A stretch of 64,000 nt of DNA from Octopus bimaculoides. Its lineage: Eukaryota. Within the stretch, counting starts at the first letter, position 1. Each line of letters starts with the position of its first letter. Shown in pieces: positions 32,236 to 62,018 of the stretch. The DNA lies in the NCBI RefSeq assembly GCF_001194135.2, contig NC_068998.1:39123251-39187250 (forward strand), in the 5' to 3' direction. Under the pieces are notes generated by a model that was not told the origin of the DNA, ran no database searches, and saw only the letters and a program-made list of their open reading frames with translations. Both the position numbers and the translations under genes were made by a program.

Positions 32236-32259
32236 GATTATGTATTGTACAGAGAGCAG
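32236..32259 (+). CDS. SH3BGRL: Candidate 24-nt micro-exon (DYVLYREQ)
   Basis: Long T-rich tract plus GACAG acceptor; CAG|GTAAAT donor; phase 0-0 and stop-free. Splice signals only, no homology evidence. Confidence 0.55.
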
Positions 32260-34187
32260 GTAAATTATTCTGTCTTCAGAGTGTTCTGTTTTTCTTCCTT
32301 AGAACAGTGTACTACTCTTCTGTCTACCTTTGTAGGTGTGCATATGGGATATAAATGCATTGTATGTGTGTGTGTATATATTTATATTTATAGTACATGT
32401 AAAGCATACATATGGTATGCATCAGAGCATACTCCCTAATATATGTATATATATATATATAGCACATGCAAAGCATATATATATATATATATATATATAT
32501 ATATATATATATATATATATANNNNNNNNNNNNNNNNNNNNNNNNNNNNNNNNNNNNNNNNNNNNNNNNNNNNNNNNNNNNNNNNNNNNNNNNNNNNNNN
32601 NNNNNNNNNNNNNNNNNNNNNNNNNNNNNNNNNNNNNNNNNNNNNNNNNNNNNNNNNNNNNNNNNNNNNNNNNNNNNNNNNNNNNNNNNNNNNNNNNNNN
32701 NNNNNNNNNNNNNNNNNNNNNNNNNNNNNNNNNNNNNNNNNNNNNNNNNNNNNNNNNNNNNNNNNNNNNNNNNNNNNNNNNNNNNNNNNNNNNNNNNNNN
32801 NNNNNNNNNNNNNNNNNNNNNNNNNNNNNNNNNNNNNNNNNNNNNNNNNNNNNNNNNNNNNNNNNNNNNNNNNNNNNNNNNNNNNNNNNNNNNNNNNNNN
32901 NNNNNNNNNNNNNNNNNNNNNNNNNNNNNNNNNNNNNNNNNNNNNNNNNNNNNNNNNNNNNNNNNNNNNNNNNNNNNNNNNNNNNNNNNNNNNNNNNNNN
33001 NNNNNNNNNNNNNNNNNNNNNNNNNNNNNNNNNNNNNNNNNNNNNNNNNNNNNNNNNNNNNNNNNNNNNNNNNNNNNNNNNNNNNNNNNNNNNNNNNNNN
33101 NNNNNNNNNNNNNNNNNNNNNNNNNNNNNNNNNNNNNNNNNNNNNNNNNNNNNNNNNNNNNNNNNNNNNNNNNNNNNNNNNNNNNNNNNNNNNNNNNNNN
33201 NNNNNNNNNNNNNNNNNNNNNNNNNNNNNNNNNNNNNNNNNNNNNNNNNNNNNNNNNNNNNNNNNNNNNNNNNNNNNNNNNNNNNNNNNNNNNNNNNNNN
33301 NNNNNNNNNNNNNNNNCCCCCCACCCACCTTGGAGTTTTCTGTCACTTAACTTGATAAAAGACAGATGAAGCAGAATGTTAAATAATTATATTAATGTTG
33401 GCAGATCTGTTGATCAAGTTATCTTTAATAAGTTTGCTATTAGAAATATATTCATGCCAGAGAAGAAATCAAATATATGGAACTCTATTATTGAAATGTG
33501 AAGAAGTGCTATGTTTCAGTAGGGGAGTGTCTCTATGACAGCTATGGACCATTGGAGACTAGGAAACAGTTGGGTTAAACATGAGAACTTTGAATCTTCA
33601 CAGATATCACTTTAAGTGAAGATTCAAGGAAAGATGTTATTGTACATCTGACCAGTCTATGACAGAATTAGTAGATGAACATTAAATTGATGATGTTTTG
33701 TCAATGAGTAGCAGCTGATTTATTTGTTTTCTTTTCTAAGAGAGAGAGAGAGAGAGAGAAGAAGAAGAAGAAGAAAAAAGAGAAAGGAGAGAAAGAATGA
33801 GATAGTTCTTACATTTTTCCTTATTTGCTAATTCTTTTTTATTGTACCATGTATTGTATTGTATCATGGTCACCATCACCACAATGTTAGCATTGTCAAT
33901 GTCTTTCCATTTTGTGAACATATTGCAATTTCAAGAACTTATGGTGAACTTTTCCAATATCCAACTACCTTTTCTAAACAGTGTAATTTATTCAACTTAA
34001 TTTGGTCTTTGTTTTATGTGTTTAATCAAAGGAGATGGGGTAGTGCCTATGGCCTTTTCAGGTCCTCCCAGGCTGGTGGCATTGGTGCAGCTGAGGCCCA
34101 GTTTAAACATCTGTTGGTCAATGTTAGAATCATAAACATGAATAAGGATGTAACCAAAGGTCTAATAGAAATGTTTACAGTAGAGTA

Positions 34188-34480
34188 AAACTCACTCTTT
34201 TACTTGTTTCAGTCATTTGACTGCGGCCATGCTGGAGCACCGCCTTTAGTGGAGAAAATCGACCCCAGGACTTATTCTTTGTAAGCCTAGTACTTATTCT
34301 ATCGGTCAAACCTCTAAGTTACGGGGACGTAAACACACCAGCATCAGTTGTCAAGCGATGTTGGGGGGGGGGGACAAACACACATACATATATATATACA
34401 TATACATATATACGACGGGCTTCTTTCAGTTTCTGTCTACCAAATCCACTCACAAGGCTTTGGTCGGCCCGAGGCTACAG
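34188..34480 (-). mobile_element. Family B SINE, young copy cut by an N gap
   Basis: Near-identical to 38243-38645 up to the gap at 34481. Confidence 0.88.
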
Positions 34481-35142
34481 NNNNNNNNNNNNNNNNNNNN
34501 NNNNNNNNNNNNNNNNNNNNNNNNNNNNNNNNNNNNNNNNNNNNNNNNNNNNNNNNNNNNNNNNNNNNNNNNNNNNNNNNNNNNNNNNNNNNNNNNNNNN
34601 NNNNNNNNNNNNNNNNNNNNNNNNNNNNNNNNNNNNNNNNNNNNNNNNNNNNNNNNNNNNNNNNNNNNNNNNNNNNNNNNNNNNNNNNNNNNNNNNNNNN
34701 NNNNNNNNNNNNNNNNNNNNNNNNNNNNNNNNNNNNNNNNNNNNNNNNNNNNNNNNNNNNNNNNNNNNNNNNNNNNNNNNNNNNNNNNNNNNNNNNNNNN
34801 NNNNNNNNNNNNNNNNNNNNNNNNNNNNNNNNNNNNNNNNNNNNNNNNNNNNNNNNNNNNNNNNNNNNNNNNNNNNNNNNNNNNNNNNNNNNNNNNNNNN
34901 NNNNNNNNNNNNNNNNNNNNNNNNNNNNNNNNNNNNNNNATACACACACACACACACACACATATGTATGTATATATATATACACACACACACACACACA
35001 CACACACACACACACACATGTATATATATTTATGTACACATACATATATACATGTTTTTGTGTGTATATATATATACATATATACACACACACACATGTA
35101 TATATATGTGTGTGTGTGTGTGTGTGTGTGTGTGTGTGTGTA

Positions 35143-59458: not shown

Positions 59459-59551
59459 ATCTCTCTCTCTCTCTCTCTCTCTCTCTCTCTCTCTCTCTCT
59501 CTCTCTCTCTCTCTCTCTCTCTCTCTCTCTCTCTCTCTCTCTCTCTCTCTC
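59459..59551. repeat. (CT)n microsatellite
   Basis: About 45 uninterrupted dinucleotide units. Confidence 0.95.
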
Positions 59552-61982
59552 CCCCTCTCCCACCCACTCTTTCACACTGTATTTTTTCTTTTTTCAAATT
59601 CTTTCTGACCCTTACATTCTTTTTGTTTCTTCCCCACACATTCTCTCCATTTTTTTCTCCCCTATTTTCTGTCTCTTTCTCACAGAGTCTTTCTGCTTCA
59701 GTCTCTCTTGTTTTCTCCTCCTCCTCTCATTGTTATTGCTATCTTCCATTATAATATCTTTATTTTACAGATGGCCTTTGTATCTTCTTACATCTGTTGT
59801 TTTAATGGTTAAACAGATCTTCAAATTTATATGTAATATTTGTATTGTTGGAGCTGGTGGTACTTTTCTTCTACTTAATTACAGTGTTAGTGATACTAAT
59901 ATCTACAGAAAGATTACCTTTGTTGTATAAACACCTAGTTTTGCTCGAAGACCTAAGATATCTTATAATGTGAGCATAAGACCAAAAAGGAGATTCCACC
60001 ATTTCTGCCATAGATGCTTAATACTGGTTAGGCTTTTCTGGCCACTGCTATCATGCTGAACACCAGGTCATATTAGATGTTATTATTTGGGAGACTTCTA
60101 CATCCTAATTGATAATGAAGATTCCTCAATCACATTAATGTTATTGGCAGACACAACATGAAATTAAAGATCTACTGAAGCTAATGGGAAACAGAGATTC
60201 TGGGAATGGTATTGTGAAATGTGTCTCAGTTGTGGCCACTTGAAGAAAATGCTTTAATGAGACAAGTAAAGTGATAAGATTTGCCAAAGAGATACATCAA
60301 GCAGAACTGATTAATTTTAATCTCGATTGAACTTATGTAGAGTTAGTTCTGTTATACTCTGACACATTGGAGCCATAATATCCTTCTATGGTTACATTTA
60401 AGCTCATAGCTGCTGGGCTATTGGCACAAACACACCTGCTCAAATAGAGCTTAAATTCTGCCCGTAAGATATTTTTTCACTAGTTATGTTCTTGACAAAA
60501 GGGTCTGTATTAATAGTCTTTCTATGCCTTTCTAAACTGAAATATAGGGCTCAGTGTGGTAGGTTTCAGTGTGTCAGTTTGAATTGATCCAGATTCAGCT
60601 GTAAATTTAGATGGTGTAGATGGCAGCTAAATATCAGGGGTATTTAGATTAAAAGAAGGAAGGTTGTGAGGAAATAAACTGCATGTGCAGTTTTATTAAC
60701 ATAAAATTGTAAGTACTTTTGCTCCCTATTTAGATCTGTGTATTTTTCTATCATCTTCAAGTGTTCTTTCACATGTAGTATATTGTGATGACTGTCATTG
60801 ACAGCTGAACTCCCTAGTTTGACGTTCAGAATTTAAGAAAAAAAAAATTATCCTGTTGTCACATAGTTTACTTCTAACTTCTTAAGCTTCATGATCAAAA
60901 GCTGACAATCATAGATATGTATCTTGACTGAATGTCTTGACCTTGTAATAGTCAAGATATTACATTCCAACACTTGTGACTTTTTCCAACAGATCTTCCA
61001 TCTCACAGCCTGGTGATGGTCAGGATTTTATTGTTTGACTCTTCATTTTTACAAGATCATGTAGCTAGAAGTGAACATATTAAACACTTTGACCTCAAAA
61101 TCTTGAAGTCAATATCCAGATCACAGCCATCTTAGTTCTAATATATTTAATATATTTAACTATATAGAGTTTCAGAATTCTCTGTGCTGTATCTACAGAA
61201 AAGTGCTACCACCTCCTAACATGTTTTTATTGATTTGTTCATGTATTTGTTTCATCTTGTTGCTAGTGTTGAGCATGTTTAGTTGAGGATGACCCCAGAG
61301 TCAGAGATAAAAAGTTGTTCGACAGTTTACTTCTTAGAGAAACATAGAACTCTGTGATTTATTAATTCATATAAACAGAAGCTGTATATGTTAGTGTGCT
61401 GAAATGTAAAGCATAGACTAACTGTTTGGGTGATACTCTTTGTCAAACAATGATCATGTCTAAAATATCTTTACTCCTTCATACTATAGATTTAAATATA
61501 TTGTTTCTGCTTTTATTCTCAAACTGAATCAGATTATTAATAATGTACCAATTATGATGATCATCTATAAAAATCTACCTTTTCCCAACCTAATGTGTTA
61601 AAAAGATAGTGTTAATAATGTGAAGTTTTGTTTTTAGTGGCAAAAACTCTACAAAGTTGCCACAATAGAAAGACTGATAGATCAATAGTTAGATTGGTAG
61701 ATTGATGGACAAGTGGTGGGCAGACAAACAGGTAATATTTCACATATCCAACGTTACCATGTCAAATTTGCACAACTTCAGACTACTACTGGAACTGGAA
61801 CCTTACTACTATTACCCCAGACTACAGTTATTAACTGTAGCCAGTACTGTCCAAAACCAGAAATATACCGAACTTCACAGAATGAGTACTGTAGCCTGAA
61901 CTAGCTGAAACGATGCTCAACCAATACTGTAGTTTATACCCCCCACTAATTCCTTTGTAATTATGTCTATTCACTAAAACAG

Positions 61983-62018
61983 GAAAAATCTGATGATAAA
62001 GAAACAGAGGAGATAAAG
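61983..62018 (+). CDS. SH3BGRL: Candidate 36-nt acidic micro-exon (EKSDDKETEEIK)
   Basis: Branch-point-like CACTAAT about 35 nt upstream; AACAG acceptor; AAG|GTAAAC donor; phase 0-0; same composition as the preceding exon. No stop codon, so the gene continues beyond the window. Confidence 0.72.

Follow-up and report, generated by a model that had tools for sequence, protein, structure and literature searches.

How the acidic tail of an SH3BGR-family protein is put together from very small exons is the question raised by a 64,000-nt stretch of the Octopus bimaculoides genome (NC_068998.1, positions 39,123,251 to 39,187,250, forward strand), referred to here as the window. A preliminary description based on the DNA letters had placed four segments of 24, 27, 33 and 36 nt around one 222-nt acidic exon, and suggested that the tail is a chain of micro-exons that may be combined freely.

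Gene structure and family identity

The window contains the 5' half of an O. bimaculoides SH3BGR-family gene. It includes exons 2 and 3 of this gene (PF04908) and the start of the acidic tail; the whole gene spans ~120 kb, and that of cuttlefish ~118 kb. The exons are the following:

Upstream of the window start: exon 1, MVIKVYISNITCNNK
296..481, + strand: exon 2, QRKCQQ…NESEYCG, 186 nt, followed by gtgagt; residues 43-104 of O. bimaculoides XP_052830263.1
25511..25570, + strand: exon 3, DYDAFADALETQNLWHFLKL (…FLKL), 60 nt, followed by gtgagt; end of the thioredoxin-like SH3BGR domain
32236..32259, + strand: 24-nt micro-exon DYVLYREQ, cag/G … CAG/gtaaat; apparently alternative, restricted to the O. 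sinensis X7 model
40065..40091, + strand: 27-nt micro-exon VLNNFESIP, tttttcag/G … CCT/gtaagt; apparently alternative, only in O. sinensis X7 together with the 24-nt exon
43147..43179, + strand: 33-nt micro-exon EYIDPDEDPEE, tttcag/G … GAG/gtaaac; in 6/6 octopus models and 0/2 cuttlefish models
54266..54487, + strand: 222-nt acidic exon KEFQDQMKQK…KKDATE; cuttlefish counterpart KELQDQLKQKIEDDD…
61983..62018, + strand: 36-nt micro-exon EKSDDKETEEIK, aaacag/G … AAG/gtaaac; in 6/6 octopus models
Past the window end: next exon, AEEEQIIVEQ…

Exon lengths are multiples of three throughout and all exons are phase 0-0. The four small segments were recovered at the coordinates and with the translations proposed for them, stop-free and in phase 0; each is 51 nt or shorter, has canonical AG/GT borders and preserves the frame. 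Their flanks are single-copy within the window and are not repeats. Assembly gaps touch no exon, the closest being the 33-nt exon, 138 nt past a gap ending at 43008, and the gap at 54731-55096 is spanned by a contig from a related species (L001). The residue following EEIK in the O. bimaculoides models is not encoded in the window.

The assignment to the SH3BGR family, already made in the preliminary description, is borne out by a PF04908 profile match of 74.1 bits (cut-off 21, E 1.1e-20) covering profile positions 17-98 of 99 and stopping at FLKL, profile position 98; the same domain is listed for the full-length octopus models. SH3BGRL-family proteins are the closest solved structures (8iah, 1u6t and 2ct6; E about 1e-12 over query residues 2-83). 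The conserved SH3BGR core PPQ[IV]FN…YCGDY[DE].F is present as VPPQVFNESEYCGDYDAF in exons 2 and 3, and these positions are invariant columns in an alignment of 63 sequences. An Asp/Glu-rich C-terminal tail of ~500-600 residues marks the protein as SH3BGR proper rather than SH3BGRL3. Seven stray transposon-like ORFs in the window gave no Pfam match at E up to 0.01.

In RefSeq the O. bimaculoides products go under 'glutamic acid-rich protein' or 'protein starmaker', and 'midasin' is used for the O. sinensis orthologue. Such names look like artefacts of the acidic tail, and they hide the identity of the octopus SH3BGR orthologue. A literature search found no publication on octopus SH3BGR, and for cephalopod micro-exons it returned one passing mention and nothing else.

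Match to public gene models

Six octopus models were compared (one from O. sinensis, four from O. bimaculoides, one from O. vulgaris), with exon inclusion judged from the gene models (RefSeq, ENA). XP_036365627.1, annotated as O. sinensis 'midasin isoform X7', reads FLKL-DYVLYREQ-VLNNFESIP-EYIDPDEDPEE-KEFQ…DATE-EKSDDKETEEIK-AEEEQ…, and the chain spliced from the window, as it had been proposed, equals its residues 94-213, residue for residue. An exact look-up of this X7 protein matched no transcript contig. The other five models (XP_052830263.1, XP_052830264.1, XP_052830269.1, UPI00071E3903 and CAI9735702.1), comprising O. bimaculoides RefSeq X1, X2 and X5, an older (2015) 566-aa O. bimaculoides model and the O. 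vulgaris model, contain the 33- and 36-nt exons without the 24- and 27-nt exons. The O. bimaculoides models are identical to the window at exons 2 and 3 and at the 33-, 222- and 36-nt exons, and exon order and strand agree with protein models from three Octopus species whose assemblies are independent.

All six octopus models thus contain the 33- and 36-nt exons, and the 24- and 27-nt exons occur together in 1/6, from another species than that of the window. Since they are in every octopus model compared, the two acidic micro-exons look constitutive. The suspicion that such exons escape gene predictors did not hold here, as the RefSeq and ENA models already contain them. Nor is the tail mainly the micro-exon chain it was taken for: past the window end it continues for another ~380 to 470 residues (AEEEQIIVEQ… to …EETEEQE).

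Chance occurrence and splice-site quality

Stop-free, phase-0 segments of 24-36 nt between AG and GT occur 285 times on the + strand of 25571-64000, compared with 322-325 times on the - strand. The bare AG…GT, frame and length criterion is therefore not above chance, as the preliminary description had cautioned in noting that such hits do occur. We scored the splice sites of 1014 candidates from both strands of the whole window with a crude matrix of metazoan consensus frequencies. By this crude measure, the 24-, 27- and 33-nt segments each have no equal among the other candidates when acceptor and donor are taken together, whereas the 36-nt segment is equalled by five + strand candidates, three of which are other claimed segments, and by one on the - strand. 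A content of at least 50% Asp/Glu is reached by only 1.5% of chance candidates.

That all four segments are chance open stretches between AG and GT in a long AT-rich intron would fit the 285 + strand and 322-325 - strand hits. It is practically impossible given the residue-for-residue match to gene models of three species, and we rejected it as already refuted by these matches.

The 24/27-nt pair

Judging from the models, the 24- and 27-nt exons appear to form a paired alternative cassette directly after the thioredoxin-like fold. O. sinensis X7 includes this cassette and the models of O. bimaculoides and O. vulgaris skip it, a comparison that runs across species only. The pair adds 17 residues, DYVLYREQVLNNFESIP, and all 17 encoded in the O. 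bimaculoides genome recur unchanged in the O. sinensis model. Between such close species this is weak evidence of constraint, because related-species introns are already 86-93% identical. In contig L001, exon identity is 94.6% against 86-93% for introns, too little contrast for constraint to be recognised at this distance. Searching a protein collection with the joined peptide retrieved one genomic read-through ORF of a related octopus (P0001, on L001), which carries no splice information. Among the homologues examined outside Octopus, none has an insert resembling DYVLYREQ, VLNNFESIP or EYIDPDEDPEE after the domain.

AlphaFold2, run on the 63-sequence alignment, gave the domain a pLDDT of 84-93 and most tail residues after ~140 values below 50. 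The 17-residue insert is predicted to be helical: a helix was placed at residues 99-110 inside it with pLDDT of about 80-90, the insert itself having no alignment depth.

Explanations of the tail

We consider it probable that this is an SH3BGR-family gene with constitutive 33-, 222- and 36-nt exons and an alternative 24/27-nt cassette after the fold, a reading that starts from directly observed exon coordinates, phases, gene-model matches and domain identity. The thioredoxin-like domain is encoded by exons 1 to 3, ending at FLKL, and is followed by small phase-0 exons separated by introns of 3 to 11 kb. The 33-, 222- and 36-nt exons, found in every model, open a long disordered Asp/Glu-rich tail of about 500-600 residues, and the 24- and 27-nt exons would form an alternative cassette adding the 17 residues directly after the fold. 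Since all exons are phase-symmetric, this cassette could be taken in or left out without a frameshift. The pair may be alternatively spliced within one species, and the structure prediction suggests that it forms an extra helix. It may also alter the short stretch after the fold, through which vertebrate SH3BGRL proteins touch the pointed end of actin and perhaps tropomodulin. Against this reading, no O. bimaculoides model among X1, X2, X5 and the 566-aa model has the 24- and 27-nt exons, and two cuttlefish models join FLKM straight to KELQDQ…, without the three upstream micro-exons, one of them being matched exactly by an RNA-seq contig.

A freely combinatorial tail, in which each micro-exon, the four here as well as others past them, is chosen independently to give many isoforms as in teleost SH3BGR, would be consistent with the phase 0-0 exons and with isoform numbers reaching X7 in O. 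sinensis and at least X5 in O. bimaculoides. An 83-aa Glu/Lys block and a 9-aa end piece distinguish O. bimaculoides X1, X2 and X5 from one another, and modules of 6, 8 and 9 aa, combined in several ways, account for the differences among ten Etheostoma cragini isoforms. Fish isoform numbers run up to X38, and bivalve and cuttlefish tails are likewise modular. Among the six octopus models, however, the 33- and 36-nt exons are constant and the 24- and 27-nt exons vary solely as a pair, and the two 3' modules that vary between O. bimaculoides X1, X2 and X5 both lie outside the window, inside which these three show no variation. We regard free combination, and with it the 'combinatorial cassette' of the preliminary description, as unlikely.

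The two non-acidic segments had been called less secure from the start. They are contained in O. sinensis X7, and they are the sole ones that vary between models. They could represent low-level or cryptic splicing in the O. sinensis annotation, functionless, with the acidic micro-exons as the only true exons; they occur in one of six octopus models, none of the four O. bimaculoides models compared has them, and nothing corresponding was found in cuttlefish or in the other SH3BGR homologues examined. Against this stand the full agreement of their residues between O. bimaculoides DNA and O. sinensis X7, the best paired splice sites of the window, phase 0 in both exons and a joined reading as an amphipathic helix with a predicted pLDDT of about 80, and we think cryptic splicing quite improbable. 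Going further than the preferred reading of an alternative cassette after the fold, we can propose only tentatively that the pair is a tissue-regulated two-exon switch, adding an amphipathic helix after the fold and altering actin or tropomodulin contact in cephalopod muscle or neurons.

Comparison with known systems

Four exons, each 24 to 36 nt long, were recovered in exact order from a reading of sequence alone, across 30 kb of gapped, AT-rich intron. The finding is correct and biologically ordinary, because public gene models already include the four exons and because acidic tails that are modular and alternatively spliced characterise the SH3BGR family in fish, bivalves and cuttlefish. 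A small practical point is that the O. bimaculoides isoforms compared lack the 24/27-nt pair; the O. sinensis X7 model, of the same gene or its orthologue, has four micro-exons identical to those of the window.

Neuronal SRRM4/eMIC-dependent micro-exons carry a UGC motif a short distance before the 3' splice site. The 77 nt preceding the 24-nt exon and the 80 nt preceding the 27-nt exon contain no TGC, so that neither exon shows this hallmark. The octopus pair is like the SRRM4/eMIC type (PMC8797185) in size (27 nt or less) and in preserving the frame, and unlike it in having no nearby upstream TGC.

The cuttlefish orthologue of Acanthosepion pharaonis (226 aa, P0157) and a cuttlefish-like transcript (217 aa, P0004) share the conserved domain with octopus, as well as a KE[FL]QDQ[ML]KQKI.DDD exon and a terminal K[ST]EE[ST]E[EN]QE. 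The two differ from each other by an 11-aa (33-nt) cassette, VFADNEQLETQ. Neither has a counterpart of the octopus 24-, 27- and 33-nt exons, and both lack the ~380-aa middle part of the octopus tail.

Teleost SH3BGR/SH3BGRL proteins (Etheostoma cragini X2-X17, Sander lucioperca up to X38) likewise consist of an SH3BGR domain and an acidic tail, in which short modules of 6 to 9 aa, all in frame, are combined in several ways; in E. cragini, tail modules are used independently within one gene. For SH3BGRL of Arctic charr, at least 18 numbered exons and differential splicing between ecotypes have been described (PMC8653899). All modules in fish are acidic and belong to the interior of the tail, whereas the octopus 24/27-nt pair is non-acidic and adjoins the fold. 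The octopus tail, at 600 to 700 aa in this comparison, is much longer than the about 200 aa of teleosts.

Human SH3BGRL, SH3BGRL2 and SH3BGRL3 (PDB 8iah, 1u6t, 2ct6, 1sj6) have the same fold and belong to the same family as the octopus domain. These thioredoxin-fold proteins cap the actin pointed end, where a variable short stretch after the fold discriminates between family members (PMC12827327). In vertebrates this variation lies between paralogous genes; in octopus, where actin binding is putative, it would come from splicing two micro-exons. If the pair does act as a two-exon switch, it would represent a splicing solution where vertebrates use separate paralogues.

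Exons of an SH3BGR-family gene in the window

The window is AT-rich (GC 0.35), contains ten N gaps and harbours the following exons of an SH3BGR-family gene, which spans ~120 kb in the chromosome-level assembly.

296-481, +: exon 2 (QRKCQQ…NESEYCG, then gtgagt)
25511-25570, +: exon 3 (DYDAFADALETQNLWHFLKL, then gtgagt)
32236-32259, +: 24-nt micro-exon (DYVLYREQ)
40065-40091, +: 27-nt micro-exon (VLNNFESIP)
43147-43179, +: 33-nt micro-exon (EYIDPDEDPEE)
54266-54487, +: 222-nt acidic exon
61983-62018, +: 36-nt micro-exon (EKSDDKETEEIK)

All seven are preceded by AG and followed by GT, are free of stop codons and have lengths that are multiples of three; the coordinates and properties given for the four micro-exons in the preliminary description were exact. 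The exons from exon 2 through the 36-nt exon are phase-symmetric in the sequence, so that any of them can be included or skipped without frameshift. The peptide joined to exons 2 and 3 matched the Pfam family PF04908 (SH3BGR) with 74.1 bits (curated cut-off 21 bits), the match ending with FLKL at profile position 98 of 99. Its nearest solved structures are of the SH3BGRL family (8iah, 1u6t and 2ct6; E ~1e-12).

Gene models containing the micro-exons

When exon 2 alone served as query, a full HMMER search revealed a 576-aa Octopus vulgaris protein (CAI9735702.1), 97% identical, whose 90% cluster includes the 598-aa Octopus sinensis XP_036365627.1 ("midasin isoform X7"). This sequence reads …FLKL DYVLYREQ VLNNFESIP EYIDPDEDPEE KEFQDQMKQK…KKDATE EKSDDKETEEIK AEEEQIIVEQ… and is identical at every residue to the spliced chain predicted earlier, in the same order. 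With it as query, the O. bimaculoides RefSeq models X1 (700 aa), X2 (691 aa) and X5 (608 aa) were detected, together with an earlier entry of 566 aa beginning at exon 2; exons 2 and 3 and the 33-, 222- and 36-nt exons of these models are identical to the window, which identifies it as O. bimaculoides DNA. Despite more than 180 shared identical residues, the O. bimaculoides and O. vulgaris models escaped a word-indexed protein search in which the joined peptide (196 aa) was the query, and were recovered only with a full-length relative. The four micro-exons are thus already in public annotation, and their assignment to an SH3BGR-family gene is borne out by their presence in Octopus gene models with the PF04908 domain upstream. 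That the tail is built of micro-exons was overstated: ~380-470 further tail residues follow outside the window in the gene models.

In RefSeq, products of this single gene with an SH3BGR domain go under 'midasin isoform X7', 'glutamic acid-rich protein isoform X1/X2' and 'protein starmaker isoform X5'; the naming seems to have been guided by the acidic, low-complexity tail, and it hides the PF04908 domain. The three O. bimaculoides RefSeq isoforms (exon 1 lies upstream of the window) carry 27 extra residues, MREKRRKYASDWKKKSKEWCGDRKADI, before MVIKVY, which is the start in O. sinensis, O. vulgaris, cuttlefish and other animals. This extension is probably an upstream in-frame ATG picked by a longest-ORF rule.

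Probable constitutive and alternative exons

Six octopus models were compared: O. sinensis X7 (out of X1-X7), O. bimaculoides X1, X2 and X5 (out of at least X1-X5) and the 566-aa entry, and O. vulgaris. The 33- and 36-nt exons are present in all six. The 24- and 27-nt exons occur together in O. sinensis X7 and are absent from the other five, where (4/4 O. bimaculoides models and O. vulgaris) FLKL is joined to EYIDPDEDPEE…EKSDDKETEEIK without them. This presence pattern best supports a reading as two constitutive acidic micro-exons plus one paired alternative cassette of 24 and 27 nt. Independent, combinatorial use of the tail exons, as first suggested, is unproven. The differences among O. bimaculoides X1, X2 and X5, an 83-aa Glu/Lys block and a terminal KSEETEEQE, lie beyond the window, at the 3' end.

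Between 25571 and 64000, AG…GT-bounded, phase-0, stop-free segments of 24-36 nt number 285 on the + strand and 322-325 on the - strand, and these features, on which the segments had been picked, are by themselves not above chance. Splice sites were scored with a crude position matrix of metazoan consensus frequencies, which ranks candidates and proves nothing more; among the 285, the summed score places the 24-, 27- and 33-nt segments second, third and fourth and the 36-nt segment eighth. Across the whole window and both strands, no other candidate (0/1014) equals the 24-, 27- or 33-nt segment in both acceptor and donor; the 36-nt segment is equalled by five others on + (three being the other claimed segments) and one on -. 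A composition of at least 50% Asp/Glu is found in 1.5% of chance candidates, and the micro-exon flanks are single-copy within the window.

Conservation outside Octopus

The cuttlefish orthologue (Acanthosepion pharaonis, 226 aa) matches an RNA-seq contig exactly. In this protein and a related 217-aa transcript, which differ by an 11-aa cassette, FLKM joins KELQDQLKQK… directly, and neither cuttlefish model has a counterpart of the three upstream micro-exons. No insert similar to the micro-exon peptides was found after the domain in the other homologues examined. All 17 residues of the micro-exon pair are identical between close octopus species, which may be taken as weak evidence of constraint, since introns of a related-octopus genomic contig (L001) are already 86-93% identical to the window (acidic exon 94.6%).

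An octopus tail block of ~380 residues (AEEEQIIVEQ…DGDSE; alignment columns 245-625) is without counterpart in the cuttlefish models, and the cuttlefish cassette, VFADNEQLETQ, aligns to its start. The terminal nine residues are conserved (KSEETEEQE in octopus, KTEESENQE in cuttlefish; columns 633-641).

Gaps and repeats

Exon order and strand are those of protein models from independent assemblies of three Octopus species. The gaps are all intronic and none adjoins an exon; because the junction peptides are contiguous in the models, a gap could not conceal an additional coding exon, at least in the modelled isoforms. The 366-N gap at 54731-55096 is spanned by L001 (977 bp, SRR11869391), in which only ~27 nt (604-632) part the matching flanks, so its estimated length is probably too large. 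A (TG)n run adjoins this bridge.

Nearly every gap (edges at 32440-32521, 34940-35140, 42100-42132, 43009-43060, 48533-48598, 49350-49400 and 53760-54200) is bordered by (TA)n or (TG)n/(CA)n microsatellites, which show up in ORF translations as YIYIYI and CVCVCV/HTHTHT and probably caused the breaks in the assembly. A dispersed repeat, probably a SINE-like element, has three copies of ~75% identity (1401-1700, 34367-34477 and 38443-38647), each beside a microsatellite; ORFs with similar translations are also seen at ~5700-5900, 21900-22140 and 39050-39270. An ORF at 7912-8181 (-) contains FVDLEKALDRVPRSVIWW, a motif of reverse transcriptases from LINE-type elements; no Pfam family matched up to E 0.01, and the ORF is at most a decayed fragment.

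Predicted structure of the putative cassette

The 24/27-nt pair would insert DYVLYREQVLNNFESIP right behind the last helix of the thioredoxin-like fold. AlphaFold2 (63-sequence alignment) modelled the domain with pLDDT 84-93, a helix at 99-110 inside the insert with pLDDT ~80-90 at no alignment depth, a second helix at 123-139 and a disordered tail (pLDDT below 50). The vertebrate SH3BGRL fold caps the actin pointed end, and a short stretch behind it sets family members apart and may touch tropomodulin (PMC12827327). We hypothesise that inclusion of the pair would change the contact region behind the fold and may thereby alter the actin/tropomodulin contacts.

Comparison with known micro-exons and modular tails

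A UGC motif marks neuronal micro-exons of the SRRM4/eMIC type; the octopus 24/27-nt pair is without it. The SH3BGR family characteristically has acidic tails that are modular and alternatively spliced: RefSeq isoform numbers of teleost SH3BGR reach X38, ten isoforms of Etheostoma cragini combine tail modules of 6, 8 and 9 aa in several ways and differ in nothing else, and one bivalve gene has four modular isoforms. Arctic charr SH3BGRL has at least 18 numbered exons, and its splicing differs between ecotypes (PMC8653899). In contrast to these acidic tails, the octopus pair is non-acidic and lies next to the fold.
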